A DNA stretch of 64,000 bases from Epithemia pelagica (GCA_946965045.2 OX337237.1:2728001-2792000); one strand, 5' to 3'. Numbered from the stretch's first letter, positions 12,740 to 41,857 are shown. Notes: generated by a model from the letters alone, not told the origin. Made by a program: numbers and translations.

Positions 12740-13483
12740 ATCGAGTCGTCGTCGTTGTTCTTCCTTTACAGTCACTACTACTACATCACATCTTGCAGCA
12801 ACACTTTGCATATTATAAACAACGTTGTCTTCTTATCCAAAAGAATGGAGCACGTTTAACTACAATTGTTTACTTTTTGTGTGTTGTAGTTATTTTTCTG
12901 AAATTGGTCATGGGTATTTCTGGTTGGTACAGATTTATAGGATTCTGAGACAATTTAACAACACGACCTTGCTTGTTCATTCACTGACGCGCAGGTCCAT
13001 GGCATTTCGAGGAAGATCGCATCACTTTTCGGAAGTACTCTCTATGTTGGATGATTGATGGAAAGAAATATTGCGTTTCTTGGATGGTCGAGTGCGTTGA
13101 GACCTCAGCATTTACTAGACATGGCGGGCGGAGGTCTGTTCCCTGACTATGACTTACGGTAGTATTGTCCATGATTCCCCATAAGGTAGAGATGTAGAGA
13201 GAGGGCGGGACTGCTGTCCGTTCCAGTCGCGAAAACATTCCATGACATTCCCGGCAACCAAAAAACGCTGACAATGTGCGAGGTCGACAGACTAACAGTG
13301 TGGACAATGGCGGTTTGACTTTGACGTTGAGAGTTGAGAAAAGAAATTGAATAAATCGACAAGCACGCACTGATCATATTTCTTCCGTATATCTACGGCA
13401 AGATCGCAGCAACAGCGACAATTGACACTACAACGACATTTTCGACATGGAATTTCTTCCAAAATAATCGATAAGTCAAGATA

Positions 13484-15768: not shown

Positions 15769-16296
15769 TCGGTGCCAACGAAGAGAGAACAGGAATGCTA
15801 CGGGCTTACCGCTTGTCCTGGTCGGGAATCAATCAACATGGGGCACTTTGACTCGAAGCTTGAATAGACCATGTTGAAGGAGGTTCACCCCCGGACATTC
15901 CACCTTCTAATGATGACTTTCTTCGCTCCACCTACTACTTGCTGCTTGTTGACATTGGCAGTTGACAGATCTACTCTATTCCCGGTTCCCGACTTCGGAG
16001 AATAAGTGATGGTGGCTTGGGTTGTTGGGGGAGAGGCACAAAATAGCCCTTGTGCGACTGCTGATTGCCGATGGTTGCTACGAGCTCCACCGCACGAAAG
16101 TTCTTCGCGCAGTAGCCCGTGCTTCACCAACTGATGAGACTTCCGCCCAACGAGATTCACTACACCATACATTTTCCAAGAGTAAAATGAATTGCCCCTC
16201 ATCCACGGTTGATTTTCTCGTAAGGTTACCTCGTACCGATGAAACCTCTCACCATGATACGAGTATGCGATTACCCTTCCTGTACGAGTGGTAAAA

Positions 16297-19038
16297 CAAC
16301 AATCATACTAGTGCAAAATGTACAAACCGCTTCCTAATGATAAGCCTATTTTATGTTACCACCACCACTGCTGCTTGTGGTCGTTGTTATAGGAGATTGT
16401 TGCATTCAGCCGAGACGAGGAGTTCATTGTTGAGTTTGGCCCCGTTGTCGTGGCACCGGATTGTCTCTTTCAGCCAAACCAAGGAGTTGATTGTTGCGCT
16501 TGTTGTAGAACCGTAGAACTGAGAGAGACAGAGATGGAGAGCAGCTGGTGATTGGTGTGTTTGTTGTCATTGTCATTATCGTGGCCCCGAAGTGTTTCAC
16601 TCGGCCGAACCAACCAGTTGATTGTTATGATGGGGACATGCACTGCCACGCGAGGCCAAAACCAATTGGTTACATGTACTTGGTTGTGTCTGTGGTCATG
16701 GTTGTGGGTGTCGTATCATCATCACCATCCGATGGCTCGGTCGTTGTGGTTGTTGGTTTTGTCGTCGTGATTCTCCATCCTGTTCTGGTTGTGGCGACAT
16801 CGGCCGAGGAGGCTGCCAAAAAGTGAAGGGAAGTCTCCCTCCATTGTTGCACCATAACACTACCTTTCAGTTGTTTATTGTTGTGTTCTTAGGTCCAGTA
16901 CAACCTCGCTGTTGTTGTTGTTGTTGTTTCCATCTGTGGTCCTGTCTTGGTCGTTGTCGCCGCTCATCAACTTGTCGAACCAAACAGTTTGCCGCTCCCA
17001 AGGCTCTTCGACCAAGGCCACCACAGCTCCACGGCGTCCACTCCTTCTTCTTCCTCTCGAACTCTGTTGTCGGAAGCAGCCGCACCACGGGCATCACCAT
17101 CCTTGATGGCAGTAGAAGCCCCTTCGACCCACGGTTGACACTTGTTTTGTTAGGACTAGTCAGGCTTTTGTTGCGTTAGAACCACCAACGGACGAGGCGC
17201 GCATTTGTTGTGTTCGGACCAATCGATGACGACGAGTTGATTGATGCGAGAAGAAAGATGCTGGATTCATTATATCGATTGCCATCCTCTTCTTTCCACG
17301 GTCACTTCCTTCGCTCCGGTTGCCAAAAATGGAAGGTCTTCCAAATCTTCCTGTAGCTCCACAGATTTTCACAGTTCATCCCTTCCCGTCCATTCCCTCA
17401 CGGTACACATGAAGATCAAGCTTCCTGGATGGTCGGCGGAGTGCTTGCACCTTTCGTTGGAGGTGCACACCGGCTTGAGTGTGCCATGGTGGTGTTATGC
17501 AGTGCAAAATGACCGTAATGCTCTTCCTACCAAGTTAGAATCACTATAGAAAAAACAGTGGAGGCCCTGAAAGCACGGATTACTGCGCGATGAACTTTCG
17601 TGCGGTGGAGCTCGTACTCCTTGCTACCCGCTCTCTACCTTTCTACGCATATCTGCATTGTACTCCCAGGGAGTACTGCCATTGTACTACTCCTTGTTTG
17701 CTGGTGTCTGTCGAAAGGTGTCCCAAACAATATACGGACTCCGGGGGCCGAAAAATTCCCCCACAGTTAGCCGTGCTTTTCATACTTGTACTCCATTGTC
17801 TATAGTTATCTGGGCCGGTGGTTTAGGAAACCACGGTCATGATACACAACATGGCAAACTCAAGCCGGTGTGCACCTCCAACTAAAGGTGCTAGCACTCG
17901 ACCACCACGGAGTCCTCAGAATCAAGTGTACTGTGACGGAATGAACGGGTGGCGATGGGTTGGCCATTTTGGTGGACCGAAGGCAAGGTTTTTAAGTCTT
18001 CCAAATCCTGGTGGGAAGGAAGCAACAAGATTACCAAGATTGGAGTCGGAGAATGATGTAATGAAGAAAGATTGCAATGAGGGACGACAATGGAAGCTCC
18101 TAAATGGATGGATGAGTCGTGGGAGAGCAGCGGCAAGGACACACGGCAATCAACTGGAGGATTCTCGTCTGAACAAAACAGTCGGCCGCAACAACGACAA
18201 CACCAACAACAGACTGTCTCTCAATGTTACGAGACCACAAGAACCCAGCAACAACCGGCCACCTTGTGGAAGTGAAGGGTCGAGTCCATCATCATGGCTG
18301 CAACAACCGCAACAACCTCAACCACAACAAAGACAGCGACTGATTTGTGGCACCACACGACGAGTTGGACGCGAAGTGAACCATTGTTTCCCAACGACGT
18401 GAAGCCCACGACCACAAAACCAACATCCACCACGACCATTCCATTGGATGGTACAAGACAATGGCACCAATGCATCATTCAACTACTCTAGACCTCCAAC
18501 AAAACCTAAATGCAACAATCCACTCCTCGTTTTGGCCACAACGACAACAACATCCAATGCAACAATCAAAAGCGGGAGGATCTTGACGACAAAACCAACA
18601 GCCACAGCGAGCGAGCCATCGGATGGTAATGATGATACGACACCCACAAACGTGACAACAGATACCACCAACCACACAACCAACTGGTTTTGGCCTCGCG
18701 TAGCATGCATGCCCCCATCGCAACAATCAACTCATCGTTTTGGCCGAACCAAACAATCCGGGGCCACGACAATGACAATGGCACCAAAAGCAACAATCAA
18801 CTGCTCTCCATCTCTGGTTCTTTCAGTTCCACAGTTCTACAACAAACACAACGATCAACGCCTTGTTTCGGCCGAACGAGACAATCCTGTGCCGCGACAA
18901 CGACAACAAATGCAACAACCAACTCCAAGTGAAACCATCACCTATACCCATGACAACAAGCAGCAGTGGTGGTGACTACATAATATAGGCTTATAATTAA
19001 TAAGTGGGTTGTATATTTTGCACTTGTATGATTGTTGT
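16297..19038. repeat. Long imperfect inverted repeat; arms ~16297-16800 and ~18560-19038
   Basis: CAACAATCATACTAGTGCAAAATGTACA... at 16297 is the reverse complement of ...TGTATATTTTGCACTTGTATGATTGTTG near 19038. The shared blocks CACCACCACTGCTGCTTG and CCATCCGATGGCTCG occur in inverted orientation. Confidence 0.8.
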
Positions 19039-19043
19039 AAATC

Positions 19044-19255
19044 TACTTTAATAGCCAGGTTGGGACGAGGAGGAGCTAGGGTGTGAGGAGTGGCTTAACT
19101 CCGAGAAGGGCAATAGCGACGAGGAGTGGACTGCCCCTGTGAGATCCGCGTAAGCGGATCGAGGGGGCAGTCCACGACGAGAAGCTATTGCCCGACGAGG
19201 AGTTAAGCCACGAGGAGCGCCCTGCGACGAGGAGTCCCCCGGGGCTATTAAAGTA
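19044..19255 (+). other. Rod-like nested hairpin (~212 nt) at the left end of element A
   Basis: Nested stems TACTTTAATAGC/GCTATTAAAGTA, GGGAC/GTCCC, GTGGCTTAACTCC/GGAGTTAAGCCAC, GGGCAATAGC/GCTATTGCCC, GTGGACTGCCCC/GGGGCAGTCCAC and GATCCGC-GTAA-GCGGATC, separated by purine-rich G..A loops. Confidence 0.95.
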
Positions 19256-20221
19256 TGTTAGCTTCCTTTGTCACGAGGAGTCGTGCGGGCGCACCCTAGG
19301 TAATTTTCGGTCTTCCTAAGTGATCGTTTATCTCTATCGATACTTAGTAATAGTTGGCCTATTTAGCTTTTTACATTCGCGCCGGTACAGTGTTAGTTAG
19401 GTATCTTGCTTGCGTGCTTGCGCACCTCATCCGATTGCTCGCGTTTCTCAATAAGCAACATACTGTCGTGCTTGCGCAACAAATCCGATGGCTCGCGTCT
19501 ATCAAATAGGTACATACGACAAGTCGTGTTGTTTACATAGGCGTGACACAGGAATACATAGGTAATGTCTATATATTACTTAGATCCCCCACCCCCCAAC
19601 GGACATTCCCACGATAATCTCTCACAGACGACACATTTTGTGCAACAACAATGCAACAACATGATGAGAAAAGGAAGACAACCGACCATGGTGACTCCTC
19701 CTCCTTCTGGTGGAGTTGCTCATGCTTCCAAACAGGTTGATTGTGGAGTCATAGACCTTTGCACCCCTCCTGATGTAATAGATCTTTGTAGTTCGTCTTC
19801 GTCGTCTAGTTGCTCATCAGACTCTTCGGGCGAAACTCTCGTCTTTGTCACCAAGGACAATGCAACAGACGAATGGGATGGCAATCTCTTTCGCCGCTCG
19901 GAACTCTACCACGACTGTACTGGGTCATCCGACGACTTCAGCACCTGTAGTTCCGACCCTTGGATCATGGAAATCCTACAGAGACGGTAAGTTTTCGCCG
20001 CGTTTCCCACCATTGTCGTGTGTTTTCGTTCCAGACGTCTTCCCAAAATTTCAAACCACCTGCCGTGCGCGCGCGCATGGTTGAGTCGCTGTTCTGTTTC
20101 CTACTGATTCCTACGTGTAACCTACGTGTCCGCACTTTCTCGCAAGTGTCACCGTCTTCACTTTCCTCACCCTCATTTTTCATTGTGCATCGTTTTTTCA
20201 TCGTCGTTTCACAGCCTGACC

Positions 20222-23200
20222 ATGGCGACTCGACAATCTCGCCGCCAACTGGAGCGGGCGGCCGCAAGAAACAATGTGGACGCCACAAACTCAACCAATA
20301 ACGTGAACCCGTACCGAAATCCCGGCCGCCCACCCAACAACCGTGCCAATCGTCCGCCATTAACGGAAGTGAACCTTCCTCCTTCCCGAAATCCTCGTCG
20401 ACAACCACAACAACAAGACAACATCCAAGCTACAGAGCAATCAAAGTAAGTGACAGTATGTTTTGTTTCTATTCTTATCTGTCTCATTCTAACCACCATG
20501 TTTCCTTTTTCCCTTCAGCAATGTTGCGAGGCCTGATCCTTCTTCCCGTCGTCACCAGATCGAAGGTCTCGATCTTCCCAATGGCGCCAACGACGCCCTT
20601 CTCAACGCCGCAACGGTTGTGGAATCTTGCAAAGTGGATACCAAGCTTGTATCCCAAGCTTTGGTCAAACGGAAGCATCTGACATGGGATGCCGAAAAGG
20701 GCTCCATGCGGATTGGTGAGGTCACCTTCAACCCGCCCACCATGAACTCTTCTCGTGCACGTTCGTTGGCCGCCTGGAGTCAATATTGTCGTCTGTCTCC
20801 AACCATATACGGCAACAACACCTTCACCATCCGTGACCTCACTGGATGCAAGGCGTCATACGACAAAGAAAAGGCCGCCTCCGTCAACAAATTTTTGGAG
20901 TGTCTTCAAAAGCATCACGAGATGCACTTTCTTCTTGAAATCGTCGAAGATATCGATGAACTGTCGGGTGGAGATACACCAACGCCGCTCCTCTTTCTTG
21001 CTCTCCGCGGAGTGAAGACTCCATCGAAATTGACATTGTTGAATAGTTGCGTAATGGTTTTTCTCGTGAACCATCGAATGCGGGGTTTCAATATGGAAAC
21101 GGATTCGGTGGAGGACCCCAAGTTTTTCTTCCAGCCCAACACAACAATGAAGATGCTGAACCATCTCTTTGCTCTTCTTAAAACACACGGGATCGTGATC
21201 GCTCAAAGTGATCTCAAACATGGGCTTGGCAATTACCATGCCTACCTTGCCGACATTTGGAACAAGGCAGCCCTCGTCCGACCCGAATTTGGCCGCCTAC
21301 CCAATCGTGCACCAACGGCATTCGACGACGAAGAAAAGATGCGGACATGCGAGCCGGAGCTTCGGCCGTTCGAAGACGGCGAGTATTCCACGGCTTTGAG
21401 CATGGGAGTCTACAAGACTTCCCGAGACTTCGGTCTCCGCGGCCCAGAAGTAAGTTGTTGTTTGTTGTTGTTGTATTTGTTGATTGTCGCCGTTGTTGTT
21501 GCTGCTGTTGTCTAACAGTTTGGTTGTTGCATGTTGTCTCCAGATAAGACTACTTAAAGTATCCGATTTAATTTTCAAGGCGTGTCTTGACAAATCGTAC
21601 GGAATGTTGGCTGGGCTTCCCGCGATTATTCTCAAAGAATCTGTGCTTGAGAAATCGTCGCACCTCGCGACGAACAATCTCGCCTTTGATCGAGTCGCCA
21701 ACGATACACAAGACTCGTCGCACATGATCATCGACAACCCAGATGATAAGTTTGCGACGTACAAGATCCTCTTGCACATCATGAAAGTGGCGCACCCGCC
21801 AGGATGGCAGGGTCTGCTGTTTCTAGAGCAGATACCCGCAAAACACCTCAAGGCCCGCAAGGATGGTGCGAAGCACCTCGGTTGGACTGAGCTCGTCCCC
21901 GAGACTTCACAGAATGACGCGGATGGATCTGGCTTCAAGTGTGCGGGTAGATTGGGCGTGAACTGGCCGTTGAGGAATGCCCGTCAACTTGCCATTCGTT
22001 GCAAGTTTGACAACGCCGAGAAGGTGACGTTCCGGACCGGCCGACGCACCGGAATCTCGAACGTTGCCAACTGTGGAGTACCACAGAAGTCGTCGAACTC
22101 CTTCGCCCGTCACAAGTCAAGTGAGGTCAACGTACTGTACCAGGACGTCTCGAAAGAAAATCATGTTCGGACCGTCACGGCCAACTGGTACCGTCCACCC
22201 GAAAAGAGCGACGAGGCCGACAAAGAAAACACGAAGAATGGTACGTAGACTCATTGCATGAATCACTCTTTATACTTTGTTACTAACTACTCTGCTATTA
22301 TGTTTAGATGAGGAGGGATCCAAGAAGAAAGAGTCAAAAACCGCTTCATCCCCCTCGTCCTCGTCGTCGTCCTCCACCGACATTGAGGCCTTTATGAAAA
22401 AGGCCAAGAAGAAGATTCGCCGTCGCAAGGCGTTGCAGCAGCTCAAGGCTGCCAAGAAACAGAATGACGATTCGTCCATCGAAGACGAGGATTCATTGGC
22501 GCGAATCCTTCGTCTCTTGGACGAAAAACCATCCAAGTCGTCCAAGTCGCAAACCCATGGTAAGTTGATTGTTGCTTTGTTGTTTTCTTGGTTGCATCGA
22601 TCTCATTCCGTCTTCTCTTGACCACAGACACCAAATCCAAGAAAAAACGCAAGAAGAAGAAGAAGAAGAAGAGTAAGTCGATCGCGGACTCATCATCATC
22701 GTCATCTTCATCGGATGGCATGCTTGAAGTTCTTTCCCGATGTCAAAAGAAAAAGAAAACTTCTCCGCCCTCTACCATCGTTGGTACGTAGATTGTTTTG
22801 TTTTGTTTTGTTTGATTGTTGCTTTATATGTTCTCACTGCCATTCCCTGTTTCATCACCTTCGTCCACTCCAGTGGCTTCTTCAAAGCCTCCTCCACCAC
22901 CTCCAGTCGAGCATGAAGCGCCACAACCGCCACCACCAGTCGTTGTACCACCACCACCACCAACAACAACAACCACGGTGGCCGTGCAACCACCACCAGC
23001 TACGTCAACAATGGACCAACATGCACCACCTCCAAACAGTGCAACAGTCCAAGCACCAACAACAACCACCGTAACAGCCATGAAACAACCTCCACTGCCA
23101 TCTACTGTTACGGCCACGCATCCACACCCAACAGCAACGACTGAGCAACAGCCACCACCACCACCACCACCAACCATTGCGACCACGGAACCAACGGTAT

Positions 23201-23715
23201 CCGCTGCAGCTCCACCAGCCATTGCGACCACATCAACGTCGCAACCACCTCCACCACCACCAACCATTGCAACCACGGAACTGCCACCACCACCCACAAA
23301 TGTGCCATCGTCAACGGCCCTTGTTCCGACGGAACACCACACCAGCCACCACAATCCCTCTCAGAATCATCACGGTGGATATCATCGCAATGACGGTAGT
23401 CGAGACCGCGGGGTTGATTGTCGTGTGGAGGAGCACCATCGTGTTGCTTATCATCGCAACAACTGGTACTCCCCACCTCCACCACCATCCGACTCGCCGC
23501 CATATCATCCTCATCATCATTCCCACCACCATTCTTCCCGAGGATACCACCACCGCCCGTACACTCCATCGCCACCACCCCCACCGTACTACCGTGACCA
23601 CATCCACCACCGTGGTGGTGGATACACTCCACCACCTCCACATCATCATCATCATCACCATCATCGTGGTTCGCGTTACCATGGCGGTAGCCATGGATAC
23701 GGCTACCACTATTGA
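20222..23715 (+). CDS. Tyrosine recombinase (Crypton-like) with a long low-complexity C-terminal tail, ~1033 aa, 6 exons
   Basis: Exons 20222-20445, 20519-21449, 21544-22240, 22308-22559, 22628-22783 and 22874-23715; all introns are GT..AG and phase-compatible (3102 nt). YR motifs FGLRGPE|IRLL..SD (Arg), EKSSH (Lys), FRTGRRTG (HxxR-like) and ARHKS...VLY (His, with Tyr at 22138). Confidence 0.8.
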
Positions 23716-24388
23716 AGTACCATAGTATTCGGTACGTTTGCTGTTGTTGTTGCATTCTTGTTGATTGCTGTATCATTGTTCTTACCCCTTTATTCACTCT
23801 TTTTGACAGATTGATGTCGCTATTGCTCTTTGCATGACCATTTGGGTGGTGGTCTCTAGCTTGACGTCTCGAAAGGTACGTGAGAATTAGATGATGACAC
23901 TTGTTCCGCGTTCCACTCCACGTTACGTACCAGTTTCTCACACGTTCACGATTTTTGTAATTCTGTCTTGGCATGAAATTTCGTGGTGCATCTCTTTGCT
24001 ACTGAATTTTCCGTGTCGTGTGAAAACTCGTCTGTGTCGTGTTTCAATTATTGCCTACATTTTGATTATTGTTTTTTGGTCTCTGTGTTTCCGTTGCTGT
24101 TGCTGGTGCTTGCTGCTTGATTCGTGTGGTGTTTGTTTGTTGTGCTCTTCTTTTTTCCGTTGGGTGCACCTCTTGTTCGCTTTGTGCTCTTTCCCGTATT
24201 CTCTCCCTGTGGATTTCCTGGGTGTACTACTTTTCTGGGTGTACTACTTTCCTGGGTGTACTACTTTTTCATTTTGGGCTATTCTAATTTTATACACTAA
24301 AATAAAAATCCAAGTACAGTAATTTTTAGGGCTTATGTAGTGTGGGTAGCGTTTTGGGAAAGGTACGACGACGAGTGGTGAAGGTAGT

Positions 24389-25396
24389 AAATCTACTTTA
24401 ATAGCTGAGGGTGGACGAGGAGGAGCTAGGGTGTGAGGAGTGGCTTAACTCCGAGAAGGGCAATAGCGACGAGGAGTGGACTGCCCCTGTGAGATCCGCG
24501 TAAGCGGATCGAGGGGGCAGTCCACGACGAGAAGCTATTGCCCGACGAGGAGTTAAGCCACGAGGAGCGCCCTGCGACGAGGAGTCCCACGGGGCTATTA
24601 AAGTATGTTAGCTTCCTTTGTCACAAGGAGTCGTGCCAGCGCACGCTAGGTAATTTTCAGTCTTCCTAAGTGATCGGCTCTCTCCTTCGATACTTAGGAG
24701 TCGAGAGCCAAATTATTATTATACAATTACGCTGACCCAACTTTTGATAGGGCACTAGGTAATCTTTAATTGTTTGTAAATAGCCATGTCACTTAAGTGA
24801 TCACATCCGATTACATCGGATGAATAATAACGGTTTATGCTTAAGTAACATTTGTCTTACATTTTTTGGAAGGCCAATCAAACTCCGAGGCGTGCCTCGT
24901 TTTTAAATAAGACAACAGAATACTTACGAGTAGAGTCAATGAATGTCCCCCATTACCCCCACGCCTCTTCTCTCCTTTCCCGTTCCCGACCCGACCCGAC
25001 CACGACCACTGAATAAACGACACAAACACAACAACAATGGGAAAGCTGACCAAGGTGAGTCCTCCTTCTCCGGGAGGATGGAGGATGTATCCATAATCCA
25101 TCCACCAACAAAAGCTCTACCAACTCCCAACTCACAATGATGGTGGATTGTTGCGAATTGCGAACCTCTGTCCATTGTCCATTCCTGGCCGTCTTTTGGT
25201 TTGTTTTTCGTTTCGGTGTTTGGGTGGTGCTACTTTTTGTTTCTTTTCCCGGGCTATTTTGCATGATTACACTAGAATAAAAAATCTACGTACAGTAATT
25301 TTAGGGGCTTAGGTAGTGTGAGTGTGGGGAGTGACTTACTCCTCAGTGAGTCCTCAGTGAGTGGGGAAGGGTAGGACGACGAGTGGTAAAGGTAGT
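24389..25396 (+). mobile_element. Non-autonomous copy 'B' (1008 bp) of the YR element, head-to-tail after A
   Basis: Same left end and hairpin (24394-24605) and same right end (...GACGACGAGTGGTAAAGGTAGT), with no long ORF. Collinear with the copy at 35877-37464. Confidence 0.85.
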
Positions 25397-25585
25397 ATTA
25401 ATACTTCCCGGTGTCGAGTCCTTTCAAGGAGGGACCGCCCGGCGCGGAGGGTAGAATGACGAGGAGGGCAATGGTCGAGGAGGGCGCACGCCCGACAAGA
25501 CAATTGCCCGTCGAGTCATTCTCCCGACAAGCCGGGCGCGCCCGACGCGAGAGGACGGCCAGACACAGGGAAGTAGTAAACTTAC
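25397..25585 (+). other. Divergent rod-like hairpin 'C', probably the left end of a related element
   Basis: Stems TTAATACTTCCC/GGGAAGTAGTAA, GTGTC/GACAC, GTCCT/AGGAC, CGCCCGGC/GCCGGGCG, GGGTAGAATGAC/GTCATTCTCCC, GGGCAAT/ATTGCCC and GGGC-GCAC-GCCC, with GAGGA/GACAA loops. It starts immediately after B's GTAGT end. Confidence 0.8.
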
Positions 25586-25804
25586 TCCCTATCAAGCTGT
25601 GTAGGTAGTGAGGATTTCCTGGAAGCCATGTCACAAAGTGTCACACAAGTGTCACACAAGTGTCACACACGAGAGGGAAACCGCGCGACTCGCACGAAAC
25701 TACTTTCCGGTCGTACAAAAATTCCTACTGTAGTATAAAAATGTGAGACGAACTACCTACACAGTCTGGTATGGAGTTAGTGGTGAACCTCCCGTCTCCC
25801 GTAC

Positions 25805-26769: not shown

Positions 26770-28695
26770 CGTCATCGCACACCGACACGCCGTTTCCCTG
26801 ACCCCGAACGACACGTTCGTTTTGAGTTGCCGTCGGAGGACAGTAGCTGGAGTACCCATTGTTTGCGTCGCCACACCACTTTTGCGCAGAACGCGTCCTT
26901 CTTTCTCTCAACGACCTCCGTCAACACCGACACCAACTCCTTTGCCACCATGGCAAATGCTCTCGACTGGACACATTGGAGCGACCCAGACTCAGGAGAA
27001 CCGTGCTACCTCGACGATCGATCCTTCTCGCTTCAAGCCACCACAGCACAACAGTTGATTGACGATTGGGACCCACGTTGTTTTGCCTCAAAATCGTTTG
27101 ATGCCGATAATCCTTCTTATTTTGATTTACCAAACATGACTCCCGAAGAGCAAGAAAAATGGTTCATCGCAATGGATCGGGAACTCGACGAACTGGAGGG
27201 CAAAGGAACATTCCGACTGGTGCCACGGAGCAACGCCCAAGGAAAGGAGATTGTCGACACTATGTGGACCCTCAAGAGAAAGCGTCTCCCCGATGGAACG
27301 ATCTCTCGCTACAAAGCACGTTTGGTGGTCCGCGGCGACCAACAAAAGGCCACGTTCGACAAAGAAGACACTTTCGCACCCGTAATTGATTGGCCCTCTG
27401 TTCGTTTATTGTTGATTCTGTCACTGCAACACAACTTGATCACTGCCTCCATTGATTTCAAGAACGCCTTCGTTCAATCCAGCTTGCCTGAACCCATTTA
27501 CGTCAACTTGCCATCAGGTTATGGAAAAGGCCACAACGATAAAGTTTTGGAAGTCAACAAGAGCCTGTACGGCGACTGCCGTGCACCACGTTTGTGGTAC
27601 GACTATTTGAAGGCCCGTCTGGAAACACTTGGTCTCACACCCGACGGAAACGATCCTTGCCTCTTCTGCAAGCCTGGATGCATCATGGTGACGTACGTGG
27701 ACGACGCCATCATCTGTGGAATCAATCAAACGGCAGTGGATGAGCTTCTGAACGGACTCACAAAATTAAAAATGGATTTTGACCACCTTGGCGACTTACC
27801 GACTTACTTGGGAGTTCAAATCACACGCTCCGACGACGGAAGCATGACTCTCACGCAACCACATCTCACTCGTAGCATCATCACAGCACTCGGCCTCACG
27901 GACAGTTCACCCAAGAAAACACCAGCAACACGAACACTCGGCAAGGACAAACACAAGCCTCCCTTCTCCGAAGACTTCAACTATCGCTCTGTTGTCGGAA
28001 TGTTACTCTACCTTGGGAACAACACTCGTCCAGACTGTGCCTTTGCAATCCATCAAGCCGCAAGATTCAGCAACGACCCGCGCGTTACACATGGAGAGGC
28101 ACTGAAACGCATCGGGCGGTATCTAAAGGGCACAAGTACACAAGGTTTGACACTTAAGCCCTCCAAAGATCTCACTTTGGACTGTTTCGTGGACGCAGAC
28201 TTCGCCGGTATATGGGGAAACGAAGATCCCCAGGATCCTTCTAGTGTACGATCACGTACTGGCTTTCTAATCTCTCTCGGCGGTTCCCCAGTGACATGGT
28301 CAAGCAAATTGCAAACGGAGATCGCACTTTCTACAATGGAAGCCGAATATATCGCCGCCAGCACCAGTATGCGGACACTACTTCCACTCCAACGACAACT
28401 ACGGAAAATGACTACCCATCTACGACTTGACAAACCTGGTGCAACCTCCATTACAACCATTTGGGAAGACAACCAAGCCGCATTGAAACTTGCCACAAAG
28501 GATCCCCCTCGAATGACACCGCGATCCAAACATATCGCTGTCAAATACCACTGGTTTCGCTCCAAACTCAATACCGGCCCAAACGGCATCCAAATGAAAC
28601 CGATTGCCACGGACGAACAACTCGGAGATTGTTTCACGAAACCTCTCGACACAACAATGTTTGAAACCTCCCGGAAGAAAATCATGGGATGGTAA
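26770..28695 (+). CDS. Copia reverse transcriptase + RNase H (inverted segment of pol)
   Basis: Motifs YKARLVVRGDQQ, IDFKNAFVQS, KSLYGDCRAPRLW, YVDD, DADFAG, WEDNQAA and KHIAVKYHW. The frame is open from 26770 and the PPT GAGGGCGAG precedes the LTR at 28716. Confidence 0.93.
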   Translation, partial: RHRTPTRRFPDPERHVRFELPSEDSSWSTHCLRRHTTFAQNASFFLSTTSVNTDTNSFATMANALDWTHWSDPDSGEPCYLDDRSFSLQATTAQQLIDDWDPRCFASKSFDADNPSYFDLPNMTPEEQEKWFIAMDRELDELEGKGTFRLVPRSNAQGKEIVDTMWTLKRKRLPDGTISRYKARLVVRGDQQKATFDKEDTFAPVIDWPSVRLLLILSLQHNLITASIDFKNAFVQSSLPEPIYVNLPSGYGKGHNDKVLEVNKSLYGDCRAPRLWYDYLKARLETLGLTPDGNDPCLFCKPGCIMVTYVDDAIICGINQTAVDELLNGLTKLKMDFDHLGDLPTYLGVQITRSDDGSMTLTQPHLTRSIITALGLTDSSPKKTPATRTLGKDKHKPPFSEDFNYRSVVGMLLYLGNNTRPDCAFAIHQAARFSNDPRVTHGEALKRIGRYLKGTSTQGLTLKPSKDLTLDCFVDADFAGIWGNEDPQDPSSVRSRTGFLISLGGSPVTWSSKLQTEIALSTMEAEYIAASTSMRTLLPLQRQLRKMTTHLRLDKPGATSITTIWEDNQAALKLATKDPPRMTPRSKHIAVKYHWFRSKLNTGPNGIQMKPIATDEQLGDCFTKPLDTTMFETSRKKIMGW

Positions 28696-28912
28696 GACGC
28701 CCGGTCGAGGGCGAGTGTCGAAGCAAACAACTGCCAACGAAAAACATCTGTCTCACATACAAAATTGACCTCAGCACTCACCATCACATTCTAGATCTAA
28801 TCGTAACACAATTCTGAAATTTACCAAAACGTACATCTACTTCCACCTACTCCCACTAGGACCAACCATGAACCTTCCAAACGAAAGATCCGACAATGAC
28901 CAACCCCAAGCG

Positions 28913-31831
28913 TGGTGCAGGATCCAACTCTGGCTCGCCCGGTTCATCTGCGAGTTCCAACTCTGGCTCGCCCGGTTCGTCTGCGAGTTCCAACTCTGGC
29001 TCGCCCGTTTCAGCTAAAGGTGAGGGTGGTGGTTCCAACTCTGGCTCGCCCAACTCCAATACGGAAGGTTCGGGCAAATCGGTTGTTTGTGGTCTTGGTT
29101 GTTGTCGATGCTCGCCCTCGACGGTTGGAGAGTCGGAACGAGGAGGCAAGGCGTCGATGTTAGAATCACCGGGAGGCAACCAAGAGGAATCCAAAGGTGG
29201 CAGGGGTCCATCAATAGAAGAGTCATGATCCTCCAGGTAGTGATCACGTGTGATGAAGTCCGGGAAGTCGCCACCGTCGGCAGGGGGTGTCCAGTCGCTT
29301 CGAACGGTGTTAAATAGCTCATCATGAACCACATGGAATTGGGGGCTGATGTGGCCGGTGGTGAGATTTCGAATCAACCCCACCGTTGTCGAATGTTGAC
29401 CGGAGAAACCCAAAAATTGTCCTTGGCGTGCACGAGAGTTCCACTTTGGAAGTTTCTTACCGTCTTGGAGACGAGGATCGAGGACATACGAAGGACAGCC
29501 CCAGACGCGAAGACGGCGAAGTTGGGTGCATGGTTCCTTTAAGCCGGTGAAGATTTCAAGAGGCGACAAAGCAGAGTCTGCGGTGGGAGTGTGGTTGTAA
29601 ATCCATGTGGCGTAGTCCAGAGCCATAGGCCACAACGTTGGGGAGAAACCATCAGGCCAGTGAAGATGGCAATGGATCATCATCGTCCGAGCCATGCTTG
29701 TCACTGTCTGAATGGCCCGTTCAGCGCCCCCGTTTTGATGGTGAGCGCCGACGCCCGAAACAGTATGAATAGGCGGTGGTGTTTGGACACGATCGGCACG
29801 CAAAGACTTCTCAAAGGCGGTGCTGGTAAGAATACCGTTGTCGGTGTGGTAGCGACGAACGGTCCGACCGACTTGGGAGGCTAGTGTTTCGAAGCTAAAC
29901 TTGGAGCGAATGGTGTCGCTTCCTCCGAGAGACACTTGTGGGTAAACGAAGATGGCTCGCGAAGCATGGTCGAAAAACAAGGTGCCGCCACAGAATCGAT
30001 GTTCAGGACGTTCCCGTCCTCTGGTGTTGTATAAACGGCCGCGTACGGATGATTCGAAGTGGTCAACAGACACCAATCCACCAGGTTCGAGTTTGCTACG
30101 GTCAGTTGGAATATGGCCTGCGTCCGGTCGAGGTTGTTTGACTGTGGTTTTGGACGGTCGACGACGTGCCTTTCCCAATAAGCAAGCATGGCATTTAGGA
30201 AGAGGACAGTTGAGGCAACTTGGAGTCCAAGGTTTCAAGCATGAGTCAGGACTGGTTTCTTGACAGTGGTATAGGTTTTGAATACGACGCATGCTCAAAT
30301 GTCCAAGGCGTTGATGATCCAACAAAAGATGTTTCTGGGCTGTTGTAAGGTTGCGGTTATTATCGGAAAATAACTCCGAAGGATGTTCTTGCTGCTGTTG
30401 AAAAGCTTCGGCTAAAGTTGCTGTTGAAGAAGATGTTTGTCGAAGAGGGCATCGGCACCAATTGGCATGTCCACATTTGCAACTTGGATCAGTGCTGTGA
30501 CTGGTAGTATTGAGAGGCTTGTGAACGTTCTTCGCCTTGACAAGAGGAAGGTTGGTCGAATGGTCAATAGGCACGGTTAGGCGGCCACCGATGGCGTCGG
30601 TCTTGATGCTTGCGAAGACATGGTTACTTTCGAAACTTGGAAAACGACGATCCAGATTCAAGTAATCGGCACAGACTTGGGGTGAACAAAGGCGTGTTCC
30701 GGCGGCCTTGCACAGGTTGGCTGGAAAGGTCCAGCGCAATAAGTCGCCGTTTTCGCTGATTGCGTCGTACGCAACAATGCCGGCACCGATGATAGGGAAC
30801 GTGTTTTCGTTGGCTGCTGTGGACATGGCTCCGAAGTTTCCGTATGTCAGTTCCACAAAATCGTCAGTGGACATGGTCAGTCCGTGGGAAGCTCCAGTAT
30901 CCAAAATAATCTGCAGTAAAGGGTCGTTTCCGCTGTTGCAAGAAGGATCGACGTGCATTGTGGGGTCTAGTCGTAGATTGAAGAGCTTGGAGTATGTTGT
31001 GGGTGTCATACAGTCAAAGCGAAAAAGGTTGCTAAAGTCTTCGCCAAGTTCGTGCAATTCTAAATCATCTGGATGTGGAATGATGATGTGTGGTGGCGGA
31101 CAGAAAGGTGCTTGTGTAAAGATGTGATCACGAAGAGTCTTGTCAAACACGTTGCCGAAACCTGTCAGGTGTAAGTATCTCGATTTGGGAACAAAAGGTT
31201 CCTGTTCAGTGTCGAAACCGAGAGAGTCAATCAAGGTAGTCCAACGTGAAGAATCCGAAACAAAGAAAGTCTCAAAAAGTTGACTTGCAACTTGTGTGTC
31301 CGTCAAAGAATCCACATAAGTCTCCCACATCTTGAAGCGTCGCTCGGCTCGGAGATGTTTGCGTCGGATCTCGCCCCAGAACCGAGGAGGTTGTCGAAGA
31401 ACTTGATGGCCTAGAGGGTATGTACTTGAAGCAAAACGGAGCTGGCGACGGTGAATGGCACAAGTAGAGCCGGGAGTGAGGACAATCGCATGATCAAGGA
31501 TCATCAGTCGAGAGTCAAAGCCACTGGGAGGAAAGGCGTAAGGGAGAAGGAAGTCCGAATCAAGCCGAGCCAAGTAAGGAGGAATCAAAGATACAGCCGT
31601 AGGAGCGAAGAAACCAGTTACACCAATCAACCAGGAGTCACAGACCGTTGAGACGAGGATCCAGAGGTAAAAAAGAGAGCCAAGTCGTCGTGCCCGAAAG
31701 GAACGGAACCACGTGTGGAGCAACGGAACCAACAATAAGACTGTCAGGGTGAGGATCAAAGGGCCGAACCAAGTCCAAAAATAGAGACTGGATAAGGACC
31801 AGAGGCCGTAACACCACGACAGAATCTCCAT
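28913..31831 (-). CDS. Copia protease + integrase (N-terminal part of pol)
   Basis: Motifs ILDTGASHG (aspartic protease), HQRLGHLS...C..C (HHCC), VSVDHF / HTDNG / QNGGAER (DDE) and RVWGCPSY (GKGY-like). 33-bp tandem repeats encode EPGEPELELAD near 28920-29010. Confidence 0.93.
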
Positions 31832-31878
31832 GTAAGTAAGAAAAGGGGCATGTGAGCACTGGAGAGATGCTCGCCCTG

Positions 31879-33324
31879 TTAAAAATCCCGGAGGCGAAGA
31901 GAGGATACCGACGCCGTAACACCATCTTGAGAGTTTGCAGTCGAAGGGGGCGTGCTATCGGAGGCATCGTTCGAAGAGTCGGTAGCAGTGGCGGTAGTAG
32001 CGGAGTTAGCCGTGGAGTCGGAGGTAGAAGCTTGAGGACGTCGAGCCTTGACTTTCGACGGATCATGTCGGGAAGTACTGTGGTTACCCCATCGACCTAA
32101 ACCGTCTTTGGTACCATTGGGACACAAACCACACCACCAAATCTTCTTGTCTTTGTTTAAGGGATGAGGGCGCCAATTGGGTTCGCCATCCTTGGGTGGC
32201 GTCGTATCGATCGGAAGGCAATTGCGACGACCAGAGTTGGAATCAGACGTTTTCTTGCTGTCAGACAATTTCTTGCTGGAGCTGGCGAAAGAAGAGCTAT
32301 CGTGACTACTAGTCGGCAACCACTTGTCGGCGAGTAAGAGATCGTTGTACTTGAGGATCACGCGTTCACGGAGCGCCACGAAGTCAAGAAGGATGGGGTC
32401 GTCGTTGTTCTCGAGACTATCAAGAAGGCTGAGAAACTTCGGAACGGTGCAAGTTTGGAGTTGCACAAAGAAAATGTTGGCGACATCCTTCGGTACGTGG
32501 CCACTCACGTTGAGGCGCATGATAGCGTTGTTAAACGTGGCACAAAAGTTAGGAATGTTCTCACCGGGATAGGCACTGACCGAGTGAGATTCCAAACGGC
32601 GAACGATGTGACGGGCGCCCTCGTGAGTAGTGGACATCATCTGATTAAGAATCATGTGGAGGATGAGTGGCCCACCTTGTTCGTTCTGTGGAATCGAGAC
32701 CAAACGGTGTTCAATATCGGAACAAAGCGAGGAGTCGCACGAGGCAAGTAGCAACTCTTGGGTCCAAGAAAGGTTCTGAGGATGAATCTTCTCACTGGTA
32801 TTTTCGGCGTACACTTGATTGCTGAGACGAATCTGGCCTTCTGAGAGAGTACAAGCAGACTCAAGTAGATTCGTAGTAGTCTTGGTGTCGTCAAGCGTGC
32901 CAGTAATCGGGTCGATAGGAAGAATTTGAAAGACGGACTGCATACAGTAGCTAGTCAAACGCCCTTTTAGGTTGAAAAGCTGCATCATCACCTTGTTGTT
33001 GTTCCCGAAGAAATCAGTGTCGTCCGTAATGCGAATGCTAGCTGTTTCCAAAGTAAAGGGAGGCGAAAGGGCAGACACTGCTTCGTTACGGAACTCGAAA
33101 AGGTTCTTCCCGCCCAGAGACTCGCAATACTTAGGTGTTACCGTGTCAGCGAAAGCGCCCAGCTCGAACTCACGACTTTTCTTGGCCGTAAACGTAATAC
33201 CGTTGATCGTAGCGGTGTCGCCATCCATGGTCGGCTTGGCGGCTTTCGTAGGCGTGGAGAAAGGAGAGTTAAGCTTCATCGTCGTTGACAGTAAGGGTTG
33301 CTTCAGAAAGTTTCCAGGTACCAA
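31879..33324 (-). CDS. Copia gag
   Basis: 481-aa ORF between the PBS and pol, with SWTQELLLASCDSSL, GGPLIL, YPGENI and a C-terminal WCGLC...WGNH zinc-knuckle-like motif. Confidence 0.8.
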   Translation of the reverse strand: MVPGNFLKQPLLSTTMKLNSPFSTPTKAAKPTMDGDTATINGITFTAKKSREFELGAFADTVTPKYCESLGGKNLFEFRNEAVSALSPPFTLETASIRITDDTDFFGNNNKVMMQLFNLKGRLTSYCMQSVFQILPIDPITGTLDDTKTTTNLLESACTLSEGQIRLSNQVYAENTSEKIHPQNLSWTQELLLASCDSSLCSDIEHRLVSIPQNEQGGPLILHMILNQMMSTTHEGARHIVRRLESHSVSAYPGENIPNFCATFNNAIMRLNVSGHVPKDVANIFFVQLQTCTVPKFLSLLDSLENNDDPILLDFVALRERVILKYNDLLLADKWLPTSSHDSSSFASSSKKLSDSKKTSDSNSGRRNCLPIDTTPPKDGEPNWRPHPLNKDKKIWWCGLCPNGTKDGLGRWGNHSTSRHDPSKVKARRPQASTSDSTANSATTATATDSSNDASDSTPPSTANSQDGVTASVSSLRLRDF

Positions 33325-34657
33325 ATATTGCTTTGGTTTTGCAATGAGGACGTCCAGTGAAAACCAATTTGTGAAGCGGTCGTGAAACTGTGGGAGTTGA
33401 ACGAATCTGAGACACAGTTCATCTTGAAAGGTAGCGGATGCAATCGGTTGGGAGTCAAGGGCTTTGTTTTCTTGAGTCTCTCCACGATTCGAGGGTTAAG
33501 TAAAGAAAGAGAACCTTGCATGTTCCAAAGCGAGTATGTAAGAAAGAGTATCAACACCCAGCGGTAGCGTTTGGGCTCATAACCTGTCGTTGTGTTGGCG
33601 TTTGAGGAGGCGCTCGCTTTGAGGGAGTTCGAAACGGTTTTAATGACCGTAACCGCTTGGGGTTGGTCATTGTCGGATCTTTCGTTTGGAAGGTTCATGG
33701 TTGGTCCTAGTGGGAGTAGGTGGAAGTAGATGTACGTTTTGGTAAATTTCAGAATTGTGTTACGATTAGATCTAGAATGTGATGGTGAGTGCTGAGGTCG
33801 ATTTTGTATGTGAGACAGATGTTTTTCGTTGGCAGTTGTTTGCTTCGACATGGTGTTTGTTTTCGTTCGGGGGTGGAGTTCTGAAAGACGATCGAACGAC
33901 ATGGAAGACAATGCCCAAGCTTGTAAACAACAGCAAGCCGTGTGTCACGTGTGTCCTCTAGGAAGCTCCTCCATCTCGTGACGAGGCAATCAATGAAACT
34001 TTCTCCACCGTCCGGACCCAACTATGAGCACAAGAAATGCGACTGGTTCAACGCAAGGAGAAAACGAAATTTATGTGTGCCTCGTGCCAGCCCCAAGATC
34101 CCACCACCCACCAAACACATGAATAAAGTGAAGTGAACCTCAAACCTCAACACTCGATTAGAACGACTGTTCGGAGATGCAACATGGAATAGTCTGGTTT
34201 ACGTTCGCGCTCTCCTTTCTGAAAATCTAATTGTCCCCTCTTTGGGGGATCACCCTGAACCCTGACGTCTGAGGTTGCGTGTTGCGTTGTTCGAATTTCG
34301 ACATCGCAATGAGACTACTCTACCCTTGACCGTTGACGTCCTGGATTCCCTCTTTTTGAAGTGCGTGAATCTCGATGTGGCCGCAAGGAGAAGTACGTTG
34401 TACGCTCGTCTGTTTGGAGTACTCGTTACTCGTACTACTCAGTGGATTGGAGTATTCGCACGAATGATTGTTTTCAATCCGAATATAGCATGGAGAACAG
34501 CTCACATAACAATACGAGCGATAAGGACATGAGGACACGATGTCGAAGTCCACAATAGGCACAAAACGTCATCATCGCATATATTTGGCTAGTCGCTGCA
34601 CTATCGACGGTCACAAGTGGGTATCTTGAATCTCTTTTTGCTTTGAAGAATAGCAGC

Positions 34658-35302
34658 ATGGACGAACGAGATCTACGAGGAGGTGGTGGTATAAGAGGTG
34701 GAAGAAGAGGTGGTGGTGGTGGTGGAAGAGCAGGAAGATTTGAAGGCAGAGGTGCAGGAAGAGGAAGGGGTAGAGGCAGGGGAAGGGGAACAGATGGAAC
34801 GGAAGGGGGGTCATTACGAGGGCTCAAGACGTCCATGAAGTTTGTTACCATTTCCTCCCTCAACGTGACGACGGACGCGAAATCCAAGTTGTCAGCAGCA
34901 TTTCTCAAGGCAGCCGCGAACCCCAGCAATGGGACAGTGCAGGTACGTATGATGCTCCGCAGGCTTTGGCGGATGCACTCCGCGCAATGTTGTTCATACA
35001 GGACTTAATCTTATGCTTTTGTCTTCAGAATTTGGTAAACGAAGTGAATAGAAACACAGCTATTGCATCTGAATGGTAAGTTCACCATGTATCATGAGCT
35101 ATTGACAGCGGTACTTGAGCACCGATTCCAACCTCACCACCGTTCCATTTTTCGTGGTTTCTACGTTAGGCACATTGTGGTTTCCGAAAGTCCAATTGGC
35201 TGCAATGCTACAAATTCGGAAGTGTTGTACGGCCATACCGAGACGGAGGATTGTTATTTTCTTGCGTTTCGATCGCGGAGTCGCTCTTCAGAGTCTGAAT
35301 AA
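34658..35302 (+). CDS. Possible small spliced gene with an RGG/GR-rich N-terminus
   Basis: GGRRGGGGGGRAGRFEGRGAGRGRGRGRGRG tract. Candidate introns 34943-35028 (phase 0) and from 35076 to an AG near 35169. No recognisable domain. Confidence 0.3.
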
Positions 35303-35629
35303 AGCAACACTCGCTGCAATGAGATAATGCCAAATATTGCATTCAACATGCATCTACCCCCCAGTTGGCATGATGATCAAGATGGTAGTAACCTGAAATA
35401 AGAGGCATGGAAACTCATTTAGGAGAGAATTGTTGACACAATTAACCTTTTGGACTCATGGGAGCGCGTTGTACTTTCTCATTGAGAGCTACCGCTTTGA
35501 CGAGACCCACGCCGATAACGCTGAATCCTCTTGACGAGACTCCAAACCCCCAAAAGCAGGGGCCCCAGCAGTAGTCGGGTCGCATTACCCCCCCGATGCC
35601 GATGGGTACTTCTAACCCCAAATCAGGAA

Positions 35630-35876
35630 CCGAACCCGGATGTTAGATATGTGATGTGAACGGAACATTGCGAATTTTTCTCCCATCATCTGTTGTTTCG
35701 TCGCTACCAAGAAATGTTCTGAAGTTCTTAGGAATGGTCGACACAACCAAAGCCCAGTTATGTGATTCCATCCACTGGTCTGAGAATCGTGGCATCACTT
35801 GAACAAGGATAGGAGGCGCATGGTGCATTTCTCTGTTTTTGGGCGCATGGTGGTGGTGTCATGGTATGGGTCTTGG
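35630..35876 (+). pseudogene. Decayed paralog of the threonine aldolase upstream/5' region; continues at 37465-37651 and 43833-43950
   Basis: Aligns with 45845-46075 (CCCGGATGTT.AGATATGTGATGTGAA, GGAATGGTCGACACAACCAAAGCCCA). Collinearity resumes after each TE insertion. Confidence 0.8.
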
Positions 35877-37464
35877 ACTACCTTTATCACTCGTCGTTCT
35901 ACCGTCGTCGTGCCCTTCCCCACTCACTGAGGAGTGGGTCACTCCCCACACTCACACTACCTAAGCCCCAAAAGTTACTGTACATGGATATTTCATTTTA
36001 GTGTAGTAATCTAGAATAGCCCGGGAAACGAAAAAGTAGGTGTTGGTTGTTGGTGCTGTGTTGTGTCTTGTGTTGTTGTATCAGTCGGAGTGGGAAATGG
36101 GGAACATTGACTATAAGTATTCTGTTGGAGTATTTAAAGAACAAGCACGCCTCGGAGTTTGATTGGCATGCGATAAATGTGGGACAAATGATACTTAGAC
36201 ATTGAGCGTTATAAGTCATCCGATATAGTTGTATGTAATCCCTTAAGTGACCAGGTTATTTACAAAGGATTAAAGATTACCTAGTGCGCCATCATGAGTA
36301 TGGCCAGCGTAAGTCTCTAAGACTAATTAGGCTCACGAGTACTAAGTATACATTAAGTGTACCGATCACTTAGGAAGACCGATAAATACCTAGAGCACGC
36401 TGGCATGACTCCTCGTGACAAAGGAAGCTAACATACTTTAATAGCCCCTGGGGACTCCTCGTCGCAGGGCGCTCCTCGTGGCTTAACTCCTCGTCGGGCA
36501 ATAGCTTCTCGTCGTGGACTGCCCCCTCGATCCGCTTACGCGGATCTCACAGGGGCAGTCCACTCCTCGTCGCTATTGCCCTTCTCGGAGTTAAGCCACT
36601 CCTCACACCCTAGCTCCTCCTCGTCCCACCCTGGCTATTAACGCCATACGTAAGGAACGCGTTTTAAGCCTAACGGATTAGCAAATAAACTACTCCCATA
36701 AAACTTTAGCGATATATGGTTTGTGTCCCATAAACTGCTCCCATCTTAACACGGTTTGAAAACTCCCAGTTTTAATTTCGAGTACAAATTTATTCATAGT
36801 GAGAATTTTTTGTCATTTTAGTCGCTTTTCTCGAACTTGAGCGGCCATCCGCGATGACCATGAGAGACAATGAGGGCGGACAATGAAAATGGCATGGATC
36901 ATCTTCCAATGATGCCAAACCAGGTCAGAATGGATGAAGGAAAGTCAATTGATCAAGACAGATGGTATGTGGAGGCGAAAGTTGACCAAGGAAAGGTTCA
37001 ATGTGTCGAAAAAGGGTCAATGCTGTGAAGCAGGCAAAAACATGGTCTGAGAGAGGGAATTGCCGAATGCTCAACAGAGGTGCTGTCAAATCACAAATAA
37101 AGACAAAGTCCTATAGTTCATATTATTTTACACCAGAATGGAAGGTCTTGACATTTGCTGTTGGAAATTGAGTGTGTGCGTACTGCTCAAAGTTGGGCCA
37201 TGGTCGATGGGATGAGAAAATCACAAAAATCATCCAAGTTTTGATACACGAAACGACTGTTATAATTTCAAAATCAGTGTAGACTATGATATATGAAAAT
37301 GTTCAAAATTCCACAAACTATTAGAATTACAAGTGAAAAAGACAATGACGTCTATATTCCAACTAGTAGATGTCTTCAAAGTTATGGGAGGAGTGTATAT
37401 ACTGCTCGAATTTATGGGATCAGTATATATACTGCTCCCTTACGTATGGCGTTAAAGTAGATTT
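35877..37464 (-). mobile_element. Non-autonomous copy of the YR element (~774 bp net), interrupted by a MITE
   Basis: The reverse complement has the same left end (AAATCTACTTTAA|TAGCC), the same hairpin (36434-36641) and the same right end (...GACGAGTGATAAAGGTAGT). Confidence 0.88.
36642..37451. mobile_element. 810-bp MITE with 14-bp TIRs and a TTAA duplication
   Basis: Perfect TIR CGCCATACGTAAGG at both ends, flanked by TTAA (36638-36641, 37452-37455). Removing it restores GGCTATTAAAGTAG, as in copies A and B. Subterminal TCCCATAAA repeats. Confidence 0.9.
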
Positions 37465-41851: not shown

Positions 41852-41857
41852 ATTGTG

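Follow-up and report, generated by a model that had tools for sequence, protein, structure and literature searches.

Cryptons are transposons in which a tyrosine recombinase is the sole enzyme; they carry introns, lack terminal inverted repeats (TIRs) as well as long terminal repeats (LTRs), cause no target duplication, show a short direct repeat between flank and terminus, and have short non-autonomous derivatives (Goodwin et al., 2003; PMC3212892). Their transposition has never been studied, no non-coding sequence is conserved among them and no hairpin is mentioned for them (PMC3212892). Passage through an excised circle has been proposed for these elements. The CryptonS elements have terminal repeats of 5-6 bp, mostly TATGG, and their proteins share a conserved C-terminal region; the single diatom entry, CryptonS-1_PTri from Phaeodactylum tricornutum, is 4,671 bp long with CTGTAAG termini (PMC3212892). 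Here we describe a 5,350-bp tyrosine recombinase element, with short sibling copies, in a 64,000-nucleotide stretch of the genome of the diatom Epithemia pelagica, referred to below as the window.

The element resembles Cryptons in all of the general traits just listed, with a flank/terminus repeat of 4 bp, and it resembles CryptonS in its stramenopile host and in having no GCR1_C domain. It differs from Cryptons in a conserved structured junction of 210-300 nt, in head-to-tail arrays and in the use of palindromic pseudo-sites as targets. The terminal repeats of CryptonS are not found, the termini here being TA...GTAG, TTAG or GTCG with a 4-bp GTNG repeat. The protein ends here in a low-complexity, Pro/His/Lys-rich C-terminus. 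Judging by its architecture and by the published Crypton descriptions, we consider it probable (roughly 70%) that this is a Crypton-type transposon lineage, present as several families in one diatom genome, that moves by its recombinase alone and carries a structured recombination site. A sequence-only reading of the window had proposed a distinct tyrosine-recombinase transposon system, and this proposal is supported by the Cre-like fold, the catalytic residues, the shared ends, the lack of a second enzyme and the absence of target duplication. That reading also knew of no rod-like terminal hairpin in Cryptons, and we found none described in the searchable literature on Cryptons and tyrosine-recombinase transposons.

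Copies of the element and its recombinase gene

The following copies were delimited in the window.

19038-24387, + strand: family A autonomous element (copy 1), 5,350 bp; first letters TAAATCTAC, last GGTAG, left flank GTTG
24388-25395, + strand: non-autonomous family A copy 2, 1,008 bp; abuts copy 1 head-to-tail
25396-25780, + strand: mini-element X, 385 bp, head-to-tail after copy 2; starts TATTAATAC, ends GTTAG; family D-type rod
35878-37465, - strand: non-autonomous family A copy 3; left flank GTTG, left terminus split by an 810-bp TIR element
36642-37451: the TIR element inserted in copy 3, 810 bp, with CGCCATACGTAAGG... at both ends and a TTAA duplication

The element had been placed at 19039-24388; its length stands, and the position moves by one nucleotide, a circular shift that follows from defining the ends as TA...GTAG. 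The two non-autonomous copies do share defined ends with copy 1, as had been claimed, since both ends align in copies 2 and 3. The left 309 nt of copy 2 are 95% identical to copy 1; at the right, identity is 75% across some 100 nt and 91% across the final 33 nt. Copies 2 and 3 have a common interior at about 87% identity and thus form one non-autonomous subfamily. An interpretation of copy 3 as left-truncated, with the adjoining sequence as the end of a further family, was rejected, as the inserted TIR element explains both. Mini-element X, the third element in the row after copies 1 and 2, was absent from the earlier description of the window; it has a relative (L006:15445-15830) that is 97% identical and has different flanks on both sides.

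Comparative loci (L001-L010) were all taken from European Nucleotide Archive (ENA) assembly ERZ21939226, which holds the window's own exon 4 open reading frame (ORF) and is taken as the same species. They sort into families by nucleotide or exon 4 protein identity to copy 1.

L004:6798-12114: family A, 98.3% nucleotide identity to copy 1, different flanks, same ends
L001:8481-14049: family A, 84% nucleotide identity to copy 1, same ends, frameshift in exon 3
L005: family C, exon 4 protein identity 50%
L002 and L003: family B, exon 4 protein identity 47-48%
L009 and L010: family F, about 43% exon 4 identity; two copies 98.7% identical at different loci
L006 and L007: family D, exon 4 identity 36-39%

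Element length in families B, C, D and F is 4.0-5.2 kb. The expectation that other copies would share both ends is borne out by full-length and short copies at different loci, including the two family A relatives. Recent, near-identical copies stand at different loci in family A (98.3%), family F (98.7%) and for mini-element X (97%). The intron between exons 3 and 4 occupies the same position in all six families, pointing to transfer as DNA rather than RNA.

Aligned to window positions 19038-24387, the more distant family A copy (L001) is a mosaic: identity is 92-99% for the opening 950 nt, falls to 74-75% across exons 2-3, rises to 84% for exon 4 and 95% for exon 5, and is 80-88% at the right end, a pattern that suggests recombination between element lineages. 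One family B copy (L002) lies on a contig of 25,936 bp, ctg905c, that also carries a Copia element; the suffix 'c' marks a circular path in some assemblers, and the contig could be a tandem-repeat artefact or extrachromosomal DNA. A further recombinase paralogue (P0013, 39% exon 4 identity, L008:8915-11322) lies amid ordinary host genes and may be a decayed or domesticated copy.

The recombinase gene, earlier described as intact with six exons, is intact but has seven exons, separated by six GT-AG introns whose phases were obtained by arithmetic.

19652-19986, + strand: exon 1, ATG at 19652; 99% conserved in L004
20215-20445, + strand: exon 2, open frame with GT-AG borders
20519-21449, + strand: exon 3, N-terminal core-binding-like domain; first catalytic Arg in GLRGPE, codon 21438-21440
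21544-22240, + strand: exon 4, remaining catalytic domain, holding K37, R164-x-x-R167, H190 and Y199 (numbered within the exon)
22308-22559, + strand: exon 5, Lys/Ser-rich; 95% identical in L001
22628-22783, + strand: exon 6, poly-Lys and Ser-rich
22874-23715, + strand: exon 7, Pro/His-rich low-complexity tail up to the stop codon

With frames tracked exon by exon, the seven exons sum to a coding sequence of 3,444 nt, that is 1,147 codons plus the stop. Database searches were run with single exons. An exhaustive phmmer search of 1.84 billion representatives recovered 86 relatives of exon 4. Two diatoms, both raphid pennates, are named as sources: Entomoneis paludosa, with a 1,027-aa transcriptome protein (P0016), and Cylindrotheca fusiformis. 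These relatives and the Copia-type elements of the window agree with a diatom host. Word-indexed protein searches returned close paralogues only and a profile search returned only its own first sequence; a PDB sequence search with the window's exons found no match, and the Pfam models DUF3504 and Phage_integrase gave no score on these exons, nor did DUF3504 on the relatives. Residues 238-501 of the Entomoneis protein align to exon 3 (25% identity, E = 4e-21) and residues 508-716 to exon 4, and this colinearity across the boundary confirms the splice between the two exons. The Pro-rich repeat tail is present in this homologue as well.

Residues 225-735 of the Entomoneis homologue were modelled with AlphaFold (predicted local distance difference test score, pLDDT, 76), and both domains of the model are covered by a match to Cre (probability 1.0, E = 7e-4, target template modelling score about 0.5). 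Further matches of the model are QRICH1, XerH, XerA, Brujita integrase, Tn1549 integrase, Flp and IntI. QRICH1 is a Crypton-derived protein (PMC3212892), and its presence among the fold matches (of this model, and non-significantly of exon 4 alone) is a hint of Crypton kinship. With the two Cre-like domains of this homologue and the catalytic residues kept, the proposal that the protein folds as a tyrosine recombinase is upheld. The R, K, xxR, H and Y motifs recognized in the window are likewise real: the first R lies in exon 3, and K37, R164, R167, H190 and Y199 are nearly invariant among 11-43 relatives. The family profile RSxRRT...RH...Y aligns to HVLRHT...GH...Y of XerA, the first position of the HxxR motif being Arg (RxxR) instead of His. 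H190 and Y199 are spaced nine residues apart, as is usual in Cre, lambda Int and XerD. A comparison of exon 4 in the window and in L001 gives a ratio of nonsynonymous to synonymous substitution (dN/dS) of 0.12 at dS = 0.71.

As had been stated, the element has no reverse transcriptase (RT), DDE or Rep gene and no TIRs or LTRs. Pfam scans of the exons and of the other scanned ORFs of at least 100 aa on both strands of the element had no matches, and its ends are without long terminal repeats. Pfam scans of 10 relatives were equally negative for RT, DDE and Rep genes. A mechanism of the Rep/HUH, DDE or RT kind was rejected, there being no such genes in the element. The intron-bearing recombinase gene is under selection and is the sole gene of the element.

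A structured left end that pairs with the right end

Three regions of copy 1 form the structure discussed here.

19044-19255, + strand: main rod, 212 nt, with seven stems, symmetric internal loops and a GTAA tetraloop
19256-19286, + strand: stretch 3' of the rod, TGTTAG CTTCC TTTGTCAC GAGGAG TCGTGC, partner of the element's right end
24253-24387, + strand: right subterminal region common to the short copies, of which the last 26 nt (24362-24387, GGTACGAC GACGAG TGGTGAAGGTAG) pair with 19256-19286

The hairpin of about 200 nt reported at the left end is real: folded as DNA it reaches -71 kcal/mol, compared with -34.7 +/- 3 kcal/mol for shuffled sequences (z = -12). Its stems are 5-13 bp long and its internal loops carry CGA(G/C)(G/A)AG on both arms, so that in duplex DNA the motif forms a direct repeat spaced 12-21 nt. 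The window contains the sequence ACGAGGAG 24 times, where 1.9 occurrences would be expected.

A rod is found in every family (A, B, C, D and F). Its start is 3-8 nt inside the left end, it shares the strand of the gene and precedes exon 4 by 1.5-2.5 kb, and it is kept although recombinase protein identity between families is only 30-52%. The z-scores of rods across families and elements range from -3.4 to -12, and two environmental contigs carry a smaller rod of the same design in front of a relative of 935 aa without introns (30% identity). Rods were analyzed as two sets, A/B/C and D/X, as a joint MAFFT alignment misplaced D and X. Compensatory changes affect 22 of 76 pairs in the A/B/C set; slid controls gave 2-8, and shuffles gave a mean of 11 with none of 500 reaching 22. 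The D/X alignment has 8 of 67 pairs compensated, with 98% of cells paired. Judged by this covariation, at least six families conserve the structure of the rod and not the sequence of its stems. Within family A the rod core is invariant in four copies, and only 1 of 222 positions differs between the window and L001, where exon 3 is just 75% identical. JGI metagenomes and IMG/VR contain no exact match to the conserved core, and Rfam contains no match. In all 11 constructs the top strand folds better than the bottom strand.

In the 98.3% identical family A copy, the rod centre (L004:6850-6971) is the reverse complement of that in the other family A copies, in a flip/flop-like manner, and one internal loop has turned into perfect duplex, giving a 28-bp perfect helix in the fold. 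This inversion could reflect a template switch, a recombination event or an assembly artefact.

The rod does not end at the border of the element. At the natural junction between copies 1 and 2, the last 26 nt of copy 1 together with the first nucleotides of copy 2 pair with the stretch that follows the rod of copy 2, and the last 30 nt of mini-element X pair with the stretch after its own rod. When right and left ends were joined in silico, the minimum-energy fold extended the rod across the junction in 10 of 10 constructs, and so in all families. Duplexes formed by the final 40 nt with the 50 nt that follow the rod have energies of -20 to -34 kcal/mol for cognate ends and -5 to -12 kcal/mol for non-cognate ends; the right-end pairing is family-specific. 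The terminal GGTAG pairs with CTTCC, and every family keeps a T.T mismatch at three nucleotides 5' of the junction; in family F the terminus GGTCG faces the partner CGTCC, a compensated change. On one side of the joining point lies this terminal helix, on the other a bubble of roughly 6 x 6 nt, followed by the rod's basal stem. As far as the literature we found goes, such a layout around a joining point is otherwise described only for bacterial recombinase systems.

Joining points, proposed movement and rival explanations

All 14 left junctions read GTNG|TA, the flank being GTAG in seven, GTCG in three, GTTG in three and GTGG in one. On the right, families A, B and C end in GGTAG, D and X in GTTAG, and F in GGTCG; flank and terminus form a 4-bp GTNG direct repeat that is imperfect at its third position. 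The nucleotides beside the ends are constant within each family. Flanks have no common repeat beyond GTNG, and no target-site duplication is seen. The circle junction GTAG-N5-CTAC that had been proposed for family A has the form deduced here for families A, B and C alike. Reconstructed empty sites of eight simple insertions approximate GTNG-N4-CNAC, with 24 of 32 positions matching at a spacer of 4 where about 8 are expected; at other spacers the 4-bp inverted repeat matches at 0-1 of 4 positions per site. One family D element (L006) sits in a copy of the TIR element, and its removal restores colinearity with the window's TIR copy, a paralogous empty site; insertion therefore occurred exactly after GAGTAG, without duplication or loss. 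In the window, copy 1, copy 2 and X stand consecutively head-to-tail, and the other left flanks ending in GTAG hint at further head-to-tail cases.

We propose the following route of movement, for which the head-to-tail junctions are indirect evidence of a circle. Exchange by the recombinase between the GTNG of the flank and the GTAG of the terminus would release the element in circular form, and circle formation would rebuild the full rod of about 270-300 nt. The circle would then recombine either with a pseudo-site in the genome or with an element already in place, at its left junction, and the latter event would produce tandem arrays. The rod is proposed to be the cis-acting recombination site of the excised circle, in which the 8-10 regularly spaced CGA(G/C)(G/A)AG loops probably serve for accessory binding, while loop motifs and crossover point may be held in a fixed geometry by the paired stems.

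Several observations weigh against this interpretation. The case for mobility is entirely comparative, and the comparative loci come nearly all from one assembly and one species. The window's own right-end pairing is weak (-11 kcal/mol, z = -0.7), with three G.T wobbles where L001 has Watson-Crick pairs. No rod is present within 4.5 kb upstream of the paralogue at L008, and environmental contig L014 shows none in its available 1.7 kb. Exon 4 modelled alone (pLDDT 80) gave only non-significant Foldseek matches, the best being QRICH1, Cre and SSV1 integrase. The left 950 nt of L001 are 92-99% identical to the window as a whole, and recent exchange of this segment may, besides constraint, contribute to the near-identity of the hairpin. 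The strand asymmetry is thin, with 4 isolated G.T against 0 A.C when both are treated alike, and the purine-rich loops supply much of the energy difference between strands.

The main rival explanation is that the rod works as RNA, as a regulatory leader, as a 5'-3' panhandle of a full-length or read-through transcript, or as a small-RNA precursor. The rod is always upstream of the gene on the same strand, the more stable strand is the gene's sense strand in all 11 constructs, by a gap that grows with RNA parameters, and each of the three changes that separate L001 from the window in the right-end helix is a transition preserving pairing of the G.U type. However, the rod starts 6 nt from the element's end and crosses the joining point, as expected of a recombination site and not of a leader. 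The Entomoneis-like transcript has a 5' untranslated region of only 53 nt without a rod, and the mobile 385-bp mini-element keeps the whole rod with no gene to regulate. Bulged rods with 6-9-nt loops are also poor Dicer substrates, and together with the lack of an Rfam match these points make an RNA role unlikely.

It is less probable still that the element is an integrated episome or virus-like replicon, its rod serving as a replication origin or in the manner of a hairpin telomere (parvovirus and poxvirus ends, protelomerase substrates), with a recombinase that only integrates it or resolves multimers. Such a replicon would have to do without a Rep, polymerase or capsid gene, and with six spliceosomal introns, one of them conserved across families. 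The head-to-tail multimers, the inverted rod centre of L004, like the flip/flop of viral hairpin ends, and the family B copy on a 25.9-kb contig whose suffix 'c' may mean circular would fit it. Against these stand the precise-ended copies at many chromosomal loci, the lack of any match to the conserved rod core in IMG/VR, and the loops, which remain mismatched, so that the arms are not routinely copied from each other.

The mismatched loops bear as well on the idea that the rod is functionless, a quasi-palindrome shaped by template-switch repair and carried along with the element's end. Quasi-palindromes are corrected by template switching, and L004, with its inversion and its one loop converted to perfect duplex, may show such an event. 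Yet correction of this kind would erase mismatched loops, while the loop motif is kept on both arms across families of 30-52% identity and in a separate, unrelated environmental contig, and the core is invariant in copies with an exon 4 dS of 0.7; we regard this explanation as very improbable. Least probable of all is a derivative of a DIRS/Ngaro/PAT-type retroelement that no longer has an RT of its own and would be copied via RNA with an RT provided in trans: DIRS-like elements, namely DIRS, Ngaro, PAT and VIPER, do combine a eukaryotic tyrosine recombinase with ends complementary to internal sequence, but they encode RT and RNase H and have terminal repeats, whereas no RT or RNase H is found in any of six families here, no terminal repeats are present, introns are retained in all copies and the nearby Copia RT is unrelated.

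Surroundings, known systems and implications

The left boundary of copy 1 is also the exact end of a 2.7-kb structure (16296-19038) with inverted arms of about 500 bp (80-83% complementary), which contains two ORFs (17839-18402 and 18448-18975) without a Pfam match. Downstream of the array, 26827-33850 holds pieces of a Copia-type retrotransposon in an odd arrangement. Its RT ORF is on the + strand (26827-28695, RVT_2, E = 2e-41), opposite to the gag and integrase ORFs on the minus strand (28856-33324), and two 197-nt arms at 28716-28912 and 33654-33850, 99% complementary, are inverted, not direct. This Copia RT is an unrelated insertion. The region between and beyond the elements is repeat-rich, with further dispersed repeats of 83-154 nt at 86-100% identity over 34107-46356, and 37956-43575 resembles the Copia-bearing portion of L002. 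The TIR element that splits copy 3 has a relative in L006 (7765-8525 plus 12891-12940) that is about 80% identical and is the one split by the family D element. Rfam and tRNA scans of the window were empty.

Other systems share single traits with the element. Tn916 and Tn1549 also transpose by a tyrosine recombinase through a circle, enter many sites and tolerate a non-identical crossover; they carry variable coupling sequences from earlier flanks, whereas the end-adjacent nucleotides here are constant within a family. Helitrons, Replitrons, IS200/IS605 and the hairpins of parvoviruses and poxviruses resemble the element in a structured end on one strand, in the absence of TIRs and of target duplication, and in the inverted rod centre of L004. 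The element has no helicase gene and no Rep/HUH gene, the latter being the mark of Helitrons, Replitrons and IS200/IS605, and Helitron and Replitron hairpins measure 11-20 bp in contrast to 210 nt here. Replitrons have not been found in diatoms (PMC10288648). The diatom plasmids pCf1 and pCf2 were considered as tyrosine-recombinase relatives and dropped, as they are published to encode serine recombinases.

The closest likeness in the layout of the site is an analogy with recombinase sites that act as folded single strands. The integron attC site is a bulged single-stranded hairpin recombined by IntI, and the folded plus-strand attP of CTX-phage is recombined by XerCD. These systems share with the element a tyrosine recombinase and an imperfect hairpin conserved in structure, with unpaired bases near the crossover, a crossover inside the folded site with most of the site at one end of the unit and a small part at the other, head-to-tail arrays, and freedom of the sequence 3' of the crossover from matching the target. 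They differ in that the element has a nuclear eukaryotic host, its own intron-bearing recombinase and no attI platform, and a rod that is 3-4 times longer with a repeated purine-rich loop motif. Their substrate is single-stranded DNA, and the exchange of one strand is resolved by replication. More speculatively, the folded top strand might be the substrate, with exchange of a single strand as in attC or CTX-phage, which would explain why element and target do not share the sequence 3' of the crossover; a modest bias towards the top strand in folding points the same way. Taken to its full extent, this analogy would make the element a eukaryotic nuclear counterpart of integron cassettes and CTX-phage, with a recombinase acting on a folded single-stranded rod made from both ends, a single top-strand exchange after GTNG, cassette-like arrays and mini-circles of 385 bp. 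We consider this bolder version rather doubtful.

For the Crypton-type lineage proposed here, the rod, its loop motif, the exact joining point, the target motif, the near-identical copies and the 385-bp mini-element together provide a defined candidate for a cis-acting site, and they open the transposition mechanism to direct tests, in vitro or in a diatom. Were the folded-DNA reading true, a strategy thought to be bacterial would extend to eukaryotic nuclear genomes. The compact pair of recombinase and site might also serve as a genetic tool in diatoms.

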